Source of the DNA: Thalia democratica
Lineage: Eukaryota
Direction of reading: 5' to 3'
DNA length: 64,000 nucleotides
NCBI GenBank assembly: GCA_965202585.1
Contig: OZ241827.1
Span: 23,250,001 to 23,314,000 of the forward strand
Shown: in pieces, positions 32,501-43,420 of the stretch
How positions within the stretch are numbered: position 1 is the first letter of the stretch
How the letters are laid out: the number at the start of each line of letters is the position of its first letter
Position numbers and translations under genes: made by a program
Notes under the pieces: generated by a model
What the model saw: the letters and a program-made list of their open reading frames with translations, nothing else
Told to the model about the DNA's origin: nothing
The model's database searches: none

Positions 32501-33752
32501 CTTAAATTAGCTGATAAAGATTTATTTTAGTTTTACATTTCTACAAATATTAAAAACTAACTTAAATTTAACAAATTTTCAAAACTTACCATAATTTATG
32601 TTTTTTACTTTTAGGACTGTAACTGTATTCAAAAAATAAATGCATTTAATACAATAGCTTAAATTGATTTCATTAATTTTTTCTTGTTCTTCCATAAAAT
32701 AAAAAACCTTAGCTAGTCCAATACATGTAGAGTGAATTAATTATTAGATTAAAAAAAAATGTTTCATAAAATTATATTGTCTTATATAGAACACAAAGAG
32801 TGTAATAAGAGTTATATCTTATTTAGTTTTTATACTTTTTAAATGTTTTGCCAGTTATGATTAGTATTGATAGTTACTCTAAAACTTTTAAGTTTTACAT
32901 AGGAAAAGTGTATAAAATTTCATTAACTTCATTTTAGTAACATATTTGGAGCTGAATAATTTTTTCTAAAAATTTTATTCACGACTCTTTTAGATTAAGT
33001 TTAAAATAATTACATTAATTTAACAAATTTTCTGGCAACATATATGTAATATAAAATTTAAGTATTTATGTTATACATGTTTTTATTTAACACTTAACAA
33101 GCAAATCTAATGAAAACTTAAAAAGTTAAAAGTTATTATTGGTTGAAATAAAGTAATAGTCTTTTTTCTATAAAATTCACTATAGACTCTAACTATTACA
33201 AAGTTAAACATTAAGAAATACTTTAAACTGTATGGTTAAAAAAATATATATGTAAAATGAAGGATAATATAAAACATTTTATTCTATCAATTGATTAATT
33301 AACTTTAGAGTTAATAAACAACACTTAAGACTGAATTAACACAAATTAAAAAAAAGTTGATTGTAGAAATAAAGAAATTTTTTACAAGTCTATTCCTTAT
33401 TATGATATTTATAGTATTTTAAAAATATTTTGTTGCTATATAATTTTATTAATTATAATTATATTTTTAGATTCAAGGTTTGCTTTGAACACATAATTCT
33501 CCAAATACTTAAATCGTCTTTGATTTTGATAATAATTGTTTTTGATATTCTGAACTGGTTTTTAGCTTTTTTCAAACCTGTTATAGTTGTGTGTACAGTG
33601 AAATCTAGCATAGCTTAGTTTTTAAAAAACCATAAGTTAAAATAAGATTTTAAGATAACAAAAAAAAGAACTTTACTTAAGTTAATATTTATTAATTATG
33701 CCGTAAGTTTTAGCTTTTTACACTGGTTTATTGGCAAACCAATTATCAAAAT

Positions 33753-34141
33753 CAGGGTTGCCACTTTACCTGGAATCCTGGAAAAACCTGGAATTTGACA
33801 GTTTAGGCAAAAATAACCTGAAATTTAAGAAATTCTGAAAAAAACTTGAAAAACCTGGAACTTTGAACAAATACCTGGAATTTTTAAGAATTTTAACTTG
33901 TTCAGTTGTAAAATTTCGGTTTGACACGAAAAATTTATAATATAGATAAAACAAATTTGTCATCATCAAAATTTATTTTAATAAAAAAATACATTTTAAG
34001 TAGCTTTACAGTATCTTTTCAATCTTTTTATACTATTGAACACAGTTTTTACCTTAAATTTAACTTTACACTTAAAATAGACCCAAAAATGTGTACTTTT
34101 AAAAACCTGGAAAAAATTTGAAAAAATGACTGGCAACCCTG
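33753..34141. mobile_element. CAGGGTTGCCA-family MITE with apparent 6-bp TSD
   Basis: TIR CAGGGTTGCCA / TGGCAACCCTG. CAAAAT on both flanks (33747-33752, 34142-34147). Confidence 0.75.
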
Positions 34142-34929
34142 CAAAATACTTTAAGAAAAAAATCTACTACTGTAAGAATTGAGTATACTGTAAAAAAAAA
34201 CATATGTATGTTAAAGTCATGCAAAAATATTATTTTATAATAGACAACATGGGCGGCTGTTTCTCGAAATTTTTGTGCGGGTACCGTATTTTTTGCTCAA
34301 TAATAAAGTTTTTCTTGTAGTATTTTTGTGTTAAAACAGTGTAGAAATTAAGTAAAGGTCTGCTATTATGTTCAAGCATTTGTTTATTGTACTAATCAAA
34401 ATTTTCTGCCAAAGAGAGATTTGTAAAAGTAATGTTTTAGTATCTTCAACTGTACAGAAATTATGAAAAGTAACTTACTCTGCAAAAGTTTTGCCTCCGA
34501 AATAAGAAATAACAACTAAAACTAGAACAAATGTTTTTTATTTTAATGTTAATTATTAGAAACTTTAAAATATTGCTATTTTTTGATAAGTTTGTTTTTC
34601 TTGTCCTTTCAAAAATTTTTTTAAAGTTTGAATTTTACTTCAGCTACTTTTAAATATCTTATGTTAATAAAATCATTTATTGTAAGTAAAGTTGAATATA
34701 GAAGTTGAAATGGTACTTAAAAAAGTTATGATTTTTGCACTAAACTTTAGTGAAAAAACTAGTTGCTAAAAAAACTTAAAATTTCAGCTAGATATCGTTT
34801 TGCAGAAAATGTTGAAATGTCACTACAGAAAAGTCTTGGTCAAGTAGTTGAAATGATATGATGTTTAGTGAACTATAAGAATCAAATTTTGGAAAACTAA
34901 ATTTCAATATCTAACAGTGTCATAAAAAT

Positions 34930-35593
34930 GGGTAGCTGTCTAAATTGGACGAAGGGACAAAATTGCACAAAATTGCACGAGGATACTTTTTCACGAAGAT
35001 AACTTTGCACGAAGGGTCACTTTTGCGTGAAGACAATTTTGCACGAGCAGACGATTTTGCACGGAGACAGACAATTTTGCGTGGGTTGTTTTTTTATTTT
35101 ATTTTAATTTTTTTTTTTTTTTACTATTACTCTTACATTTACCCCTCCTAACCTTTACCCATTGTAGGTAAGTTTATTTAGTTTTAATTAGTTTTATATT
35201 TTAATTTATAATTATCTTTTATTTTTTGATTTTTTTTTGACTATCATTGTTACCCCTAGCCCTTACCCTCGGTCGGTAGCTTTTTGAATTTTTTTTGTTT
35301 AATTTTTTTTTTATTGTAATTTTTATTAATTATGTTTTTATTTTTATTCTTATTATCACTATTACCCATGAACCTTACGCTCGGTCAATAATTTTTTTTA
35401 AATATATAAAATTAATAATATTATTATTCTTTTTCTTAATTTTATTATTTTTTCTTTATTTTTTTACTCACATTCAAAAATGTAACTCGTGCGAAATTGA
35501 CTCTTTGTGCAAAATCGTCTTCGTGCAATTTTGTTCTCGTGCAACTTAGTCCCCTCGTGCATTTTTGTCTTCGTGCAATTTAGACCCGTTCCT
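34930..35593. mobile_element. MULE-like non-autonomous element (GGGTAGCTGTC/TTGCAC family)
   Basis: Termini GGGTAGCTGTC and GACCCGTTCCT with inverted TTGCAC arrays. Flanks CATAAAAAT / CGTAAAATT are a 7/9 match. Confidence 0.7.
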
Positions 35594-36236
35594 CGTAAAA
35601 TTATCATATTGAAAGACTTGCAGAATATGCTTTAATACGACCTAATTTTTTATTTTTTTACAATTTAGTTTACTGTAAACAAAAAAACGACGCACAAAAT
35701 AATTGGTCCAAGGACTTGGTGCATGAAGAACTTTTCAAGTTGCACACCTCATAGATAATTTTCAACATCTTGTCCAGGACTTTTATTAAACAAAATAAAT
35801 AAAAGTTTAAATAACAGATTTATAAGCAACTAAATGTAGTTAAACTATATTAAGTAAAATTGAACACTTTTGAAGTAAAATCTTATTTTGTAGTTCAAAA
35901 ACAACATATAATCATTATTTGTTACTTATGTGAGCATTTTTATTTGTAAACTTTAACGAAACTTAGTAAAAAAAATTATTATAAAAATAGGCTCTTTTAA
36001 AACATCAGTTTATTATGACATCACTGTTAAACTTTATGTTTAGTTCTCTTTCATCTGACAGCTAGTAGTGCATAAGCATGTGGTGAAACTTTCTCAATCT
36101 TTACACTTTATAATATCAGCATCCATTCTTTAAAATTTCAGCGAAAAAGCACCACCAACTCTTTTAGCGTGTATTTCAGATTAAACAAAGTTTTTAAAGA
36201 ACAATCTAATTTTTTCATCTTTATCTTGTTTTTCAG

Positions 36237-36254: not shown

Positions 36255-36865
36255 GTAAGTAATTAAAACTCAACCTTGAAAGACAACATGGGTTCCACGT
36301 TAAAAATTAAAATTAATAAAACGACCATTTTAGTAAATTAAAAGTGATTAAAGTATATTACTTTTAGTAGTTTATATTACTATTTTATGAAATATTGTTT
36401 TGCACTTAAATCTTCTTAAGATATTTCTGTAGGTCTTATTACTTTTTATAAGCACAACTTTGTTTGTAGTTATTTGTTTTGTTGTTCTTAGTAGTTTGTA
36501 AACAAATATTTGACTATTTTGTTTCTTTAAATAAAAAACCTACACAAATATTATATATTCGTCAGCCATAAAATCGTTTCAAAGTAGGTTTTTGACGTAA
36601 ATGAAATACTACAAAATTGTAAATGATACCATAAAGTAAAATTTCTCAACCAACAGTACCGTTTATAAACTTTTACAGTATAATAGTTTTATTTTATGTA
36701 GTTCAATTCAGTACAAAATTATACTTTTTGATATATTGATATTAGAAGAAAAAGGTTAGTGAAATTAGTTTGAAATGTTATAATTGTAAATTTTGCTTTT
36801 TATGTTAAACTAGATAAAAAAATATTAGCTAATTTATAAAACCTAAAACACTTATTTTTCAGAAA

Positions 36866-38140
36866 ATGTTTAAATTGTTTAAAGTTAAATTACTAACTCT
36901 TCTCATAGCATGTGCTTTTTTGACGTCAAGTGGCCGTAGCTACGACGACACTTTTGTTTCCCGCGAACAAGAAAACAACTCTGATTACTTCATCACCGAA
37001 AAAAGCTTCAAGCAAAGCAAAGTTTTAGGAAACTGCTGCCTCGTAGCCGGCATGGCCACGTTGCCGGGCAACGCTGAGCTGCGCCACCAAGTGTTGTCGC
37101 CAAACTTCACAAAGCCACAAGAACGGGAATTCTTCCAATTCAACATTTACCGGATGGGAAAGCTCCATCGAGCGGAAGTCGACGTTAAAAGTTTGCCGAC
37201 GGCGGAAGACGGAAGCGAGCTGGTTTACTCGAGCAGCGCATACGGCGACTTGGTCGGACCCTCGCTCGAGAAAGCCCTGGTCGACGTGCACTTCGGGGGC
37301 GAGTACGATTCGTCCGAGGAGGCCCACCCCTCCACCGTCCTGACCAGCTTCACAAACGGCTACTACGAAGAGTTTCCAATCGTCTCGATTTTAGGCTTAA
37401 AAATAAGGGACGTGGTCCAACACGGGTTAAAAAGCAGCTCTCCGATGTTGGTCCAGTTTGCAAACAGGCCGGGGTTGTATGAATGGCATTGTTACACTTT
37501 GCTTGACATTAAAAACGACACTGCACAGCTGTACAACCCGCACGGCAGCTACCTTCAAATGACTGAAAGCGACTTCTACGAAAACTTGGAATCACTCGAC
37601 ATTGCTTATTACAAAAACAAAATATTCAGAATGCCGCAGCTTGAAGCTTCTTTTGAGTTCAACGAAACTTGGCCTGCGCTGCGACAGCACGAGAAAATTC
37701 GATTTGTGGAATACGACCTGGTGGTTGACGAAAACGACACGCAGTTGCTGTTTAACTTACTCGCCAAGCGTGATTCTCGTCCGGGCGTTTCTCCGAAGCT
37801 TTTCATCTTTGCCGTCGACAATGAAAACGGTGAAAAAAGCCTCCGAATGGTGCGAAATTCGGTGGTGCGTGGCTACAGAAAATCCAACGAAGAGATTTAC
37901 AGTTACACCGACTCTTTGAGAGCGACACTGAATAGCGGCAAGTACAAGGTGGCGGTCGTGCTGTCGACGTGCTGCACGTTTCGCAACAGCGCCTCTTGCG
38001 AGGAGTACTTGCGAAACGGAGGAGGCGAGTTTTTGTTCCGCCTCGCCGCTTCGAAGCGCTGTTCGGTCAGCAAGACTCAGGATAAAGACACCGAAATGGT
38101 CGAAAAAGTGCTCACCGACTATGAAGTGGGAAAATATTGA
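36866..38140 (+). CDS. Calpain-family (peptidase C2) cysteine protease with N-terminal signal peptide, single coding exon
   Basis: 424-aa ORF. QSKVLGNC57 resembles calpain QGxLGDCW; also SLEKALV..FGGEYD, WH208CYTL and LYN224PHG, giving the Cys-His-Asn triad. The C-terminal ~170 aa is beta-rich like calpain domain III. Hydrophobic N-terminus KLLTLLIACAFLTSSG. AATAAA near 38256. Confidence 0.85.
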   Translation: MFKLFKVKLLTLLIACAFLTSSGRSYDDTFVSREQENNSDYFITEKSFKQSKVLGNCCLVAGMATLPGNAELRHQVLSPNFTKPQEREFFQFNIYRMGKLHRAEVDVKSLPTAEDGSELVYSSSAYGDLVGPSLEKALVDVHFGGEYDSSEEAHPSTVLTSFTNGYYEEFPIVSILGLKIRDVVQHGLKSSSPMLVQFANRPGLYEWHCYTLLDIKNDTAQLYNPHGSYLQMTESDFYENLESLDIAYYKNKIFRMPQLEASFEFNETWPALRQHEKIRFVEYDLVVDENDTQLLFNLLAKRDSRPGVSPKLFIFAVDNENGEKSLRMVRNSVVRGYRKSNEEIYSYTDSLRATLNSGKYKVAVVLSTCCTFRNSASCEEYLRNGGGEFLFRLAASKRCSVSKTQDKDTEMVEKVLTDYEVGKY

Positions 38141-39066
38141 TGAAAGCTGAAGTTTTTCCAAAATGTTAAGCGTTGATACCAGCTGCTGGCTTATTTAAAT
38201 TCAACACTGTTTTTGTTTGTTTGCTTTTACGACTAGTAAATATGATTCGTATACTAATAAATTTTCAGTAGTTTTTAACAAATTGCAAACACTAAAATAC
38301 TGCAATTATTAGTGTTTTTTTTTGTTGTACTTAAAAACTCTAACTCATATGGCCACATTTTTAATCTTAATCTTAATATAATTTCAAAGTATGCTACTTA
38401 TAAACGTTTATATTTAGAAAAGTAAAGAAAGTTATAACTACGTGTTTAGGAATCTGCACAGTGAGCTAGCAAACGGCAGTACAATTTTTTAGGTTACCAG
38501 AAAAATAAACTAAGTGTTTACATAGTAAGTAAGAACGTTTTTACTTGTTTTGATATTTTGTTTTTTATGTCTAAGTTTTGGTAAGATGAAGTGCGGCCAT
38601 AAGATGTGTATAGAGTATTTCACAATTTTACCAAAGAATAAGGACTAGTTATCTTATGGGTCCAGCCGAATAACATCATTTTAGATCCAGATCCGAATCG
38701 GTCCAGGTCCTTATTTTAAAATAAGATCCAGATCCGGACAAACCAAAAAAAAATCCAGGTTTGTCCGGATCCTTATGTATATGTATGATAGATAACTGAA
38801 ATTACTTTAACAGTTTCAGCTCTTTCCAACTATTATTATATTGCTTAGAAAATTTTATAAGAGTAGTCTTCACGGGGTAGTTTAAAAAAGGTCTTAGGCG
38901 TATTTGAGGGAAGTTTTAAAACTTATACTAGGTACTAAGATCGACGAAAACATCGGCGAAAGTCTACAGAGCCTAAGCCTTGGCTTTCATATGCCGTGAA
39001 ACAAGCTTAATTTTAACATAATGTTATACCATACCAATTCGACCATCAGACTGTAAGCCTACGGTA

Positions 39067-41839: not shown

Positions 41840-43420
41840 ATGAACATATTTCAAAGCAAATCAAGCCAAATCTCGCTCAGCCAGCTCAAGTACGAGGGGG
41901 TGATCCTAGGTGAGGGGTCGTTCGGGGTGGTGAGGCTGGCCAAGCACCGGGTGACCAGGAGGAAGTACGCGGTGAAGGTGCTTAAGCACGATCACGCGAC
42001 CAGCCAGGAAGAAAGGGAGGCGATCGACAACGAGACCGGCATACTCGAGCAGATGGACCACAGGTTCGTGGTCAGGACGTGGCACGTAAAAAGGCAGCCT
42101 AAAGCCACCTACCTGGTCATGGACTACTGCTCCAAAGGTTCATTATTGGACTACATCAACGGCATCACGGAGCCGTTGACGGTGCACCAGTTCAGGAGGT
42201 ACACGGCGCAGATGGTGTCCGGCCTGATGTACGTCCACGACCGCGACATCTGCCACCGCGACATCAAGCTGGAGAACTACGTTCTGGACGCCAGGCGCGA
42301 CGTGAAGCTCATCGACTTCGGCCTCTCGAAAGTGACCAAGCTGCGGCAGAAGGAAAGGGTGGGCACGCCGGCGTACGCGGCTCCGCAGGTGTGCGAGCAC
42401 GACTACGACCCGTTCAAGGCGGACGTGTGGGCGCTGGGCGTGGTCATGTTCTGCATGGCGCACGGTGATCGGCCCTACGACTCGGACGACTTCGACGAGA
42501 TCCTGCGGATGCACAAGGATCCGATGAAGAAGCCGCTGGTGGCCGTAGGCCACTACGACGTGGACCGGATCCTGTTCAACACGCTCAGGGTAGACGAGGA
42601 CGCGAGGTGGGGTCTGGACGAGTTGTCCGAGGTCGAGTGGCTGCATCCCATACCCTGCCTCTCGCCGTCCAGAAAGAACAGGATAGAAATGAGCAGGATG
42701 AGGAGGAAGAAGAGGGTGATGGCGGAGCAGAGGAAGCCGGTGCTCAGGAGCAAAAGTCAGCACAAAGTTGGGAAAATAAAGGTAAGCGAAAATGTGCCTT
42801 ACATGGAGATAACCAAGCAGAAAGAAAAAACTAAGAGAGGAGTCATTGAAAAGCTTAAAGGTGAAGAGTTGTGCAGTAGTAACTGTGTAGTAAAACAAAA
42901 TAAAAAAGAAAAGAGAAGAGAAAAAGAACAAAAGTTTTATAAAGAATACAAAAAAGAACCGAAAAACTCTAGACATAATAAAATGTTTAGGACTAATGAC
43001 AGGGGGCAATCTGCGTATGCATTGGACCAAAATAACCGTGTAATGACAAAGCCGCGCAGAAACAAGTTAAAAACTACAAAACAGCTCGACAACTTTTTCG
43101 AAATTTCCGAAAACAAAAGGGAATTCTTTGTGGTCATCGAAGCTTCGAAACAGGACATCCACGAAAAGTGCTTGCAGGCGCTGAGGGCAAACTTCGTCGA
43201 TTGGAAACGGGTGCGCGACTGCTACAGGTGCAGCAAGAAACTTAGCATGTGTCACGTGACCTTCCTGATGAGCGTGCGCGTTGACTTCGCCACCAGCGAC
43301 AAAGTCACGGTGAAGTTCGTGAAGAAGGACGGTTCCGACGAACACTTCTCCGTTGTTTCCAAAAAGATCTGCAAAGAGTTTTTCGGCGCTGCCAGAAGGC
43401 CGCAGAGCTGCGTTCTTTGA
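41840..43420 (+). CDS. Intronless CAMK-group Ser/Thr kinase, MARK/AMPK-related, with C-terminal KA1-like domain
   Basis: 526-aa ORF with GEGSFG, YAVK46, E65 in helix C, HRDIKLEN, DFG, GTPAYAAPQ and DVWALG. Lys-rich linker. The C-terminus VKFVKKDGSDEHFSVVSKKICKEF resembles the end of MARK KA1 domains as I recall them. Confidence 0.9.
   Translation: MNIFQSKSSQISLSQLKYEGVILGEGSFGVVRLAKHRVTRRKYAVKVLKHDHATSQEEREAIDNETGILEQMDHRFVVRTWHVKRQPKATYLVMDYCSKGSLLDYINGITEPLTVHQFRRYTAQMVSGLMYVHDRDICHRDIKLENYVLDARRDVKLIDFGLSKVTKLRQKERVGTPAYAAPQVCEHDYDPFKADVWALGVVMFCMAHGDRPYDSDDFDEILRMHKDPMKKPLVAVGHYDVDRILFNTLRVDEDARWGLDELSEVEWLHPIPCLSPSRKNRIEMSRMRRKKRVMAEQRKPVLRSKSQHKVGKIKVSENVPYMEITKQKEKTKRGVIEKLKGEELCSSNCVVKQNKKEKRREKEQKFYKEYKKEPKNSRHNKMFRTNDRGQSAYALDQNNRVMTKPRRNKLKTTKQLDNFFEISENKREFFVVIEASKQDIHEKCLQALRANFVDWKRVRDCYRCSKKLSMCHVTFLMSVRVDFATSDKVTVKFVKKDGSDEHFSVVSKKICKEFFGAARRPQSCVL

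Follow-up and report, generated by a model that had tools for sequence, protein, structure and literature searches.

The window analysed here, a 64,000-nucleotide stretch of the genome of the pelagic tunicate Thalia democratica (assembly GCA_965202585.1, contig OZ241827.1, positions 23,250,001 to 23,314,000 of the forward strand), contains a gene for a compact calpain whose N-terminus has the anatomy of a signal peptide. The gene occupies positions 36866..38140 (+ strand) of the window and is a complete single-exon coding sequence, 424 codons followed by TGA, the sole long open reading frame (ORF) at that position. Our preferred reading, to which we give a probability of roughly 0.6, is that the signal peptide is cleavable and that the protease would be delivered to the lumen of the endoplasmic reticulum (ER) and onward. 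The protein belongs to a clade with signal-like N-termini, within a large and so far undescribed family of mini-calpains that is specific to its lineage, and its predicted topology is unusual for calpains. Classical animal calpains are indeed cytosolic, calcium-switched enzymes. The gene had been singled out by an earlier reading of the letters and ORF translations (hereafter the sequence-only reading), which proposed a retro-derived or horizontally acquired calpain redirected to the secretory pathway.

The predicted signal peptide spans residues 1-23 (36866..36934, + strand). It comprises a basic n-region with three lysines and a charge of +3, an 11-residue hydrophobic core (h-region, residues 9-19) and a Thr-Ser-Ser-Gly c-region, with candidate cleavage sites of the -3/-1 type after residues 21, 22, 23 and 25; these boundaries are rule-based, and they agree with the classical ER pattern of a positive n-region, an h-region of 7-15 residues and small residues at -3/-1, all inside the first ~30 residues. 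The structural model described below shows this N-terminus as a helix, and the linker behind it as disordered. Codons 1-23 are the most constrained part of the gene: the ratio of nonsynonymous to synonymous substitution rates (dN/dS) is 0.15 there, compared to 0.34-0.49 for the two folded domains, so the segment is both translated and under constraint. The anatomy is conserved in the clade. In a subclade of 12 members defined by the residues Cys58 and Cys209, the sequenced N-termini have an n-region charge of +1 to +3 and an h-region of 11-17 residues, and -3/-1 cleavage candidates lie near the core in all of them except P0004. The hydrophobicity of the segment is kept across the whole clade of 17 members and in several species. 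The L006/L008-L010 branch, with an h-region of 19 residues, is less clear and may be signal-anchored.

The family also provides an internal control for the orientation of the segment. In the N-anchored paralogues L073, P0015, L069 and L046, the residues before the core are neutral or negative and those after it carry a charge of +2 to +5. The signal clade shows the reverse pattern, with +2 to +3 before the core and -1 to +1 after it. According to the positive-inside rule, the positive flank stays on the cytosolic side of the membrane; the signal clade is therefore predicted to translocate its protease domain, whereas the N-anchored paralogues are predicted to keep theirs in the cytosol. This charge contrast within one family is, as far as sequence can tell, the best available argument for translocation of the clade's protease domain.

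The body of the protein is a calpain by sequence and by fold. It matches the Pfam family PF00648 Peptidase_C2 (E 1.1e-10; 41.6 bits for a cut-off of 23.8), as do all 36 aligned family members; its sequence matches in the PDB are calpain-1 and calpain-2 chains, and comparison of the family profile with the calpain-1 core gives an E of 1e-22. The Pfam scan returned no family besides Peptidase_C2 and no EF-hand at E up to 1, and the NCBIfam search returned no match. The AlphaFold2 model, computed from an alignment of 36 paralogues and relatives (alignment A1), has a predicted local distance difference test score (pLDDT) of 87.7 and a predicted template modelling score (pTM) of 0.85. A helix at the N-terminus (2-20) and a linker lacking order (20-39) lead into a core of mixed alpha/beta structure (~45-250), behind which come an all-beta region (~258-405) and a terminal helix. 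The best Foldseek match is full-length m-calpain (E ~1e-16, ~400 aligned columns), and the length of this alignment supports a domain III-like tail. Isolated calpain cores are matched with a root-mean-square deviation (rmsd) of 2.4-2.7 A over ~250 columns, the cores of calpain-1, -3, -8 and -9 with E values of 1e-9 to 4e-13 and an rmsd mostly of 2.4-3.7 A; calpain-7 is matched as well, through its C2-like domain (2qfe). The best 30 matches among AlphaFold DB clusters are calpains only (12-19% identity, query ~35-420), none of them a close relative.

The modelled architecture is thus a calpain core followed by a domain III-like sandwich, with no EF-hands. Behind the signal peptide comes a variable, predicted-disordered linker (residues 24-44, 36935..36997, + strand; pLDDT <50 at 20-39) that is poorly conserved in alignment A1. 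The protease core PC1+PC2 (residues 45-250, 36998..37615, + strand), delimited by Pfam, by the profile comparison with calpain-1 and by Foldseek, holds Gln50, Cys57, His208 and Asn224 together with the clade-specific Cys58 and Cys209. The C2-like (calpain domain III-like) beta-sandwich (residues ~258-405, 37637..38080, + strand) is all-beta in the model and is aligned together with the core to m-calpain and to calpains of AlphaFold DB (query ~35-407), and none of the 36 family members matches Pfam PF01067 Calpain_III by sequence. The protein ends, past the sandwich, with a single amphipathic helix taken from the model (residues 409-423, 38090..38134, + strand); this helix is fast-evolving, with a dN/dS >1 that comes from 17-18 codons, too few for a firm claim. 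Membership in the calpain family, a compact catalytic domain, a domain III-like tail and the lack of an EF-hand domain had all been put forward by the sequence-only reading and are borne out here, the tail by its fold and without a Calpain_III signal.

The catalytic residues are in place. Their codons are at 37013-15 (Gln50), 37034-36 (Cys57), 37487-89 (His208) and 37535-37 (Asn224), those of the two additional cysteines being at 37037-39 (Cys58) and 37490-92 (Cys209). Gln50, Cys57 and His208 correspond to Gln109, Cys115 and His272 of calpain-1 in the profile alignment, and Asn224 was assigned from an N-P-x-G motif and the fold match. Across 96 family sequences the Gln, Cys and His are invariant, while position 224 is Asn in 64, Asp in 30 and Thr in 2, i.e. 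Asn or Asp in 94/96, so that the Cys57/His208/Asn224 triad noted earlier is indeed intact. Both active-site tryptophans of calpains are replaced, one by Cys58, which had already been pointed out as the residue after the nucleophile, and the other by His226. Judged by these residues, the protein looks catalytically competent.

Calcium binding by the core is a different matter. Site 2 of the calpain core is built from Glu302, Asp309, Met329, Asp331 and Glu333; the corresponding region of alignment A1 (N224-Y248) holds no invariant or near-invariant acidic residue. Site 1 of calpain-1 is formed by Val99, Gly101, Asp106 and Glu185 (PMC4057710). In the tunicate protein Asp106 aligns to Ser47, a position held by Asn in the majority of family members, and Glu185 is aligned to a gap; since the acidic ligands of site 1 are missing, calcium is probably not needed for activation. 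We infer that site 2 is likewise absent and that the active site would assemble independently of calcium.

To place the gene among its relatives, paralogues were counted by a six-frame search of the 802-Mb assembly, which gave 226 first-look candidates. The genome holds at least 100 matches, nearly all of them single open frames of ~390-520 codons, and about a quarter of the matches listed carry stop codons; a count of paralogues had been suggested in the sequence-only reading, and the answer is at least 100 single-exon copies. The nearest copy is 96% identical and lies 78 kb away in inverted orientation. Many copies form tandem mini-calpain arrays (C8 19.25-20.06 Mb, C1 3.0-5.9 Mb and C1 74.30-74.41 Mb; loci L008-L011 and L020-L063). 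Conventional multi-exon calpain genes with Calpain_III are also present, at C1:46.99-47.61 Mb (several, clustered), C9:35.87-35.90 Mb and C1003. Outside the genome, an index of 5.8 billion proteins gave seven matches, and a profile search of 1.84 billion representatives gave 63 at E <1e-30. The contigs sampled for these relatives are marine metagenome DNA in 9/9 cases; in 5/9 the source is the Tara Oceans project PRJEB4352 or a run belonging to its series. The mini-calpain family is absent from annotated protein databases and, beyond close relatives, generic calpains match over the catalytic core only, with the exception of a few mini-calpains of ~400-450 residues (P0088, P0074 and others).

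A maximum-likelihood tree was built from the conserved body, the targeting ends being left out, with the distant mini-calpains as its root. In this tree the 17 signal-like sequences group together in a single clade with a support of 99 in the Shimodaira-Hasegawa-like approximate likelihood ratio test (SH-aLRT), nested among signal-less paralogues; its sister group starts with Met-Phe-Lys but has no hydrophobic N-terminus. The hydrophobic N-termini of L022 and L064 look like separate, independent gains. Ten copies of the signal clade are intact in the genome (L001-L010), and three others are altered: the N-terminus of L011 is replaced, L012 contains a stop codon and C1:74410123 is a broken partial copy with a TGA. 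Relatives belonging to the clade also occur in Tara Oceans metagenomes. Redirection to the secretory pathway, as proposed before, fits the nesting of the clade among signal-less paralogues, and beyond this point it is a matter of sequence logic.

The 60 further paralogues retrieved for a comparison of the termini show that most family members have no N-terminal hydrophobic segment. Several have other features of interest. L021, L038 and P0009 start with Met-Gly-Asn-Ala-Ile-Ser/Arg, which is myristoylation-like. Hydrophobic, tail-anchor-like C-terminal tails are found in L034, L042, L043, L045, L054, L055, L057, L058, L060, L061, L063, L065 and L066, that is, in one whole array and in others, while L073, P0014 and P0015 have long N-terminal anchors with a positive C-flank. 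The protease module thus appears to carry differing predicted membrane-targeting devices according to subfamily.

Because an upstream coding exon could bury the hydrophobic segment, the position of the start codon matters. A polypyrimidine tract followed by CAG (36851..36862, + strand) ends 3 nt before the ATG and is a candidate 3' splice acceptor, probably for spliced-leader trans-splicing. A (Y)n-AG motif is found 2-3 nt 5' of the ATG in every signal-clade locus examined that has an intact N-terminus, in the genome and in metagenome contigs alike. Between AG and ATG there are 2 nt in some loci and 3 nt in the rest, even though these loci encode homologous N-termini; this variable phase best places the acceptor in an untranslated leader and argues against an upstream coding exon that would bury the signal. 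The absence of coding introns noted in the sequence-only reading holds, the 424 codons forming a single ORF with the acceptor only before the ATG. The exact ascidian-type 16-nt spliced leader followed by GT, whose pattern we take to be that of the Ciona leader, occurs 1048 times in the genome, compared to 22 times for a reversed control, and marks the host as a tunicate with trans-splicing. A search for the tunicate cellulose-synthase GH6 gave no match here or in the control genomes and says nothing about the host. The abundance of this leader together with the conserved acceptor suggests trans-splicing, and the 5' leader of the mRNA is probably spliced or trans-spliced.

Note that the copies of the spliced leader plus GT include an array on C26 (7129, 22214, 37299 and 52384, a 15,085-bp period) and one at L079:1501-1518, and that many of them may be retroelement-borne rather than part of spliced-leader RNA genes. 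Two other readings of the upstream region were considered and set aside. A short cis-intron in the leader would use a GT donor-like site ~105 nt upstream that is not conserved in the paralogue or the orthologues, and a TATA/initiator reading is not favoured, the TATA-like element not being conserved in the orthologue L013. No splice joints were seen at the gene in contigs of three DNA runs, where coverage is genome-like over the gene and the intergenic DNA, and there is no leader-bearing cDNA among the contigs of the nine relatives. At the other end of the gene, a candidate polyadenylation signal, AATAAA (38256..38261, + strand), lies 116 nt past the stop codon; the paralogue L002, which is 96% identical, has it at an equal distance.

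The succession of events that we propose is as follows. The single coding exon would give rise to an mRNA whose 5' end comes from spliced-leader trans-splicing at 36862/36863, leaving a 19-nt leader and making 36866 the first AUG. The signal peptide would insert with its N-terminus in the cytosol and be cleaved near Gly23, and the protease module would enter the ER lumen, from which it would either leave the cell or reach a lumenal compartment. At its destination the mature protein would act as a Cys57/His208/Asn224 endopeptidase that is probably calcium-independent. The gene would be one of about ten intact signal-bearing copies forming a derived clade in a lineage-specific mini-calpain family of a pelagic tunicate, the remaining members of which would be untargeted or held at membranes on their cytosolic face. 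Direct observation covers the integrity of the gene, its family membership and fold, the conservation of residues, constraint, clade structure and signal anatomy; trans-splicing, translocation, cleavage, secretion, activity and calcium independence are inferred from these.

Several points weigh against delivery to the secretory pathway. The signal peptide was assigned with a rule-based script rather than a trained predictor, the public runs that hold the locus are DNA runs, and the relatives are all metagenomic DNA. The five sequons listed by the sequence-only reading are all present (N37, the one in the linker, N80, N217, N266 and N290); their number is nevertheless at chance level (5 for 3.1 expected from composition, Poisson P = 0.20) and they are uninformative on secretion. 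Enrichment in sequons was tried as a mark of secretion and rejected, the ratio of observed to expected being 1.12 in the clade vs 0.86 elsewhere, with P = 0.2 for the gene. There is no cysteine pattern that clearly marks extracellular disulfides, and the C-terminal cysteines are common to cytosolic paralogues. A thiol protease released into oxidising seawater would, moreover, need a protective environment. Finally, the repeated membrane tethering seen in the family keeps an uncleaved anchor a live alternative.

In that alternative, which we regard as unlikely, the segment is an uncleaved signal anchor, and the protein a type II membrane protein whose protease lies in the lumen or outside while being tethered to the ER, the Golgi or the plasma membrane. 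The sister branch L006, L008-L010 gives it some substance, with its 19-residue hydrophobic core and few or no cleavage candidates, as do the repeated evolution of tethers just mentioned and the hydrophobic C-terminal tail that P0005 adds. In the protein studied here, however, the core has just 11 residues (15 uncharged), fewer than a stable span would require, and is followed by a classic small-residue c-region and then by a disordered linker.

It is less probable still that the segment serves to hold a protease facing the cytosol at a membrane, or to direct it to another organelle. Most family members are cytosolic by sequence, and several paralogues have an N-anchor with a positive C-flank, a tail anchor or a Met-Gly-Asn-Ala-Ile-Ser/Arg start that is predicted to leave the catalytic domain in the cytosol; L018, furthermore, carries the Cys58/Cys209 pair without a hydrophobic N-terminus. 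The flank charges of the clade are, however, the reverse of those of the N-anchored paralogues, and the segment lacks the amphipathic, Arg-rich character of mitochondrial presequences.

We also considered, as a very improbable case, that the gene is one of the duplicates of a large family with fast turnover, silent or in decay, and that its N-terminus has no present function. The runs holding the locus being DNA runs would suit this, as would the stop codons in about a quarter of the family matches listed, clade members L012 and C1:74410123 included, and the replaced N-terminus of L011. By contrast, the reading frame is intact in the gene, in the 96%-identical paralogue and in the orthologues of other species; dN/dS is 0.3-0.5 overall, 0.33-0.42 as measured for the gene against the nearest paralogue and the orthologues, and falls to the low value given above in the signal codons. 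The catalytic residues are all kept, and the GC content at third codon positions (GC3) is far above the mutational background.

Base composition bears on origin as well. The surroundings are sparse and AT-rich, with a GC content of 24-29% between genes vs 49% in the ORF; the GC3 of the gene is 0.62 and its flanks have a GC of 0.26-0.27. Paralogue GC3 spans 0.19-0.64, all in AT-rich flanks (19-30% GC): the arrays on C8 and C1 have values of ~0.19-0.25, no different from their flanks, and those of the signal clade, of L016/L019, of L018 and of L072 are 0.45-0.64; expression-linked codon usage and age are candidate causes of this split. An intronless 526-codon protein kinase gene (41840-43420, + strand; Pkinase, E 1e-55), 3.7 kb downstream, has a GC3 of 0.74 and no acceptor evident immediately 5' of its ATG. 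Given the GC3 of the kinase gene and the range among paralogues, a high GC3 characterises part of the host's own genes, possibly those that are well expressed, and does not mark foreign DNA. The flanks of the calpain gene are themselves host-like, AT-rich and common to orthologues.

The two origins offered by the sequence-only reading are not supported. As regards horizontal acquisition, the nearest relatives are the paralogues, more than 100 in number, that share the genome, along with eukaryotic contigs from plankton; the C2-like domain is of eukaryote type, and there is no bacterial protein among the best 30 structural matches. As regards retroposition, the identity of the nearest paralogue is 93.4% over at least 3.8 kb including the flanks; because the flanks were co-duplicated, this copy arose by segmental duplication at the DNA level. 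No spliced-leader remnant was found in the 78 loci examined (~70 of them family loci), and there is no poly(A) tract after the AATAAA. It is possible that a retrogene founded the whole intronless family. An origin by horizontal transfer, e.g. from bacteria, or by recent retrocopying is thus hardly credible: although the gene is intronless, its coding GC stands out from that of its flanks and bacterial C2 homologues with signal peptides are described in the accessible part of a survey (PMC4631099), the best non-family matches are eukaryotic calpains with domain III, the many diverged paralogues span the whole GC3 range, the neighbouring kinase gene has a higher GC3 still, and the duplicated 3.8 kb carries flanks without leader remnant or A-tract.

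If the preferred reading of a cleaved signal peptide is retained, the cysteine pair invites a further, rather doubtful proposal. Cys58 and Cys209 are found in 12/12 members of the subclade vs 2/79 and 6/79 of the other sequences, respectively, and further metagenome fragments with a hydrophobic N-terminus also carry the Cys-Cys motif. Cys58 adjoins the nucleophile in lobe 1, and in lobe 2 the neighbour of the catalytic His is Cys209. It is conceivable that an inter-lobe disulfide between them, formed in the oxidising lumen, replaces the calcium-driven alignment of the lobes, and that the clade comprises the first eukaryotic calpains in the classical secretory pathway, constitutively assembled, calcium-independent and extracellular, e.g. 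in gut, feeding mucus or tunic. The presence of the pair in L018, without a hydrophobic N-terminus, counts against the disulfide. One sequon, N266, is typical of the clade (9/16 vs 1/79 elsewhere). The sequence Gly-Asp-Cys-Cys is found at the nucleophile of P0053, a signal-clade relative from a metagenome (L082:2001-3310), whose gene was called as two pieces (162 + 238 residues) and is either broken or intron-containing.

Two other features of the window were recorded. Upstream of the calpain gene, 33591-34181 and 34773-35757 are high-copy interspersed repeats, the depth of the corresponding contigs in three DNA runs being 100-5,000x that of the surroundings. Closer to the gene, ~250 nt upstream (36566-36865) and ~1 kb downstream align at ~79% to the contigs L013 and L074 from other species; flank conservation is about that of the coding region, which points to near-neutral divergence or to conserved regulatory sequence.

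A eukaryotic clade with a conserved, selectively maintained, cleavable-type signal would, if confirmed, widen where and how the calpain fold is used. It would provide a tractable system for the conversion of a cytosolic regulatory protease into a lumenal or extracellular one, a conversion that would involve the loss of the calcium sites, the loss of the gating tryptophans and the gain of an active-site cysteine pair. With its more than 100 copies, the unstudied family ranks among the larger expansions of calpains in animals; on the same rather doubtful proposal as the disulfide, it would amount to an experiment of nature that has sent a single protease module to every cellular address: free, myristoylated, N-anchored, tail-anchored and secreted. 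No publication about calpains of thaliaceans, or describing a signal peptide in a eukaryotic calpain, came up in our literature search. The calpain expansion of Rhodnius reportedly consists of classical cytosolic calpains.

Like the classical calpains CAPN1 and CAPN2 (MEROPS C2), the tunicate protein combines a papain-like two-lobe core with the Gln/Cys/His/Asn set and a C2-like sandwich after the core. It differs from them by its low identity (12-20%), a core of ~205 rather than ~300 residues, and the lack of a penta-EF-hand domain, of a Calpain_III Pfam signal and of the acidic ligands of calcium site 1. In addition, it has Cys58 and His226 in place of the active-site tryptophans, a single-exon coding sequence and a signal-like N-terminus. 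Membrane-targeting elements are joined to a calpain core in the phytocalpain DEK1, in C. elegans clec-119 and in the TVAG calpains of Trichomonas as well; these proteins are multi-pass or tethered from the cytosolic side, whereas in the tunicate protein a short signal of the cleavable type is predicted to precede a soluble module. The paralogues that start with Met-Gly-Asn-Ala-Ile-Ser/Arg resemble the N-acylated calpain-like proteins of kinetoplastids.

In the accessible part of the survey by Rawlings (2015), eukaryotic calpains are cytoplasmic and eight homologues have predicted transmembrane helices (PMC4631099). Signal peptides are given there for three bacterial C2 homologues and, within that part, for no named eukaryotic one (PMC4631099). 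The bacterial proteins, such as Q8A0R1 of Bacteroides thetaiotaomicron and Tpr of Porphyromonas, are akin to the tunicate protein in having a calcium-site-poor core predicted to leave the cytoplasm, as far as that text goes (PMC4631099). They differ in an architecture of their own, with discoidin, PPC and other domains; a bacterial cluster has the lowest score among the feature matches (0.81), and the sampled close relatives of the tunicate protein are all from marine plankton metagenomes. The C1 cathepsins of invertebrate guts belong to another family of clan CA and have an inhibitory prodomain and conserved disulfides, neither of which is evident in the tunicate protein. They are, like the enzyme predicted here, signal-led cysteine endopeptidases that are lumenal or extracellular, and in this respect would be its likely functional analogues.

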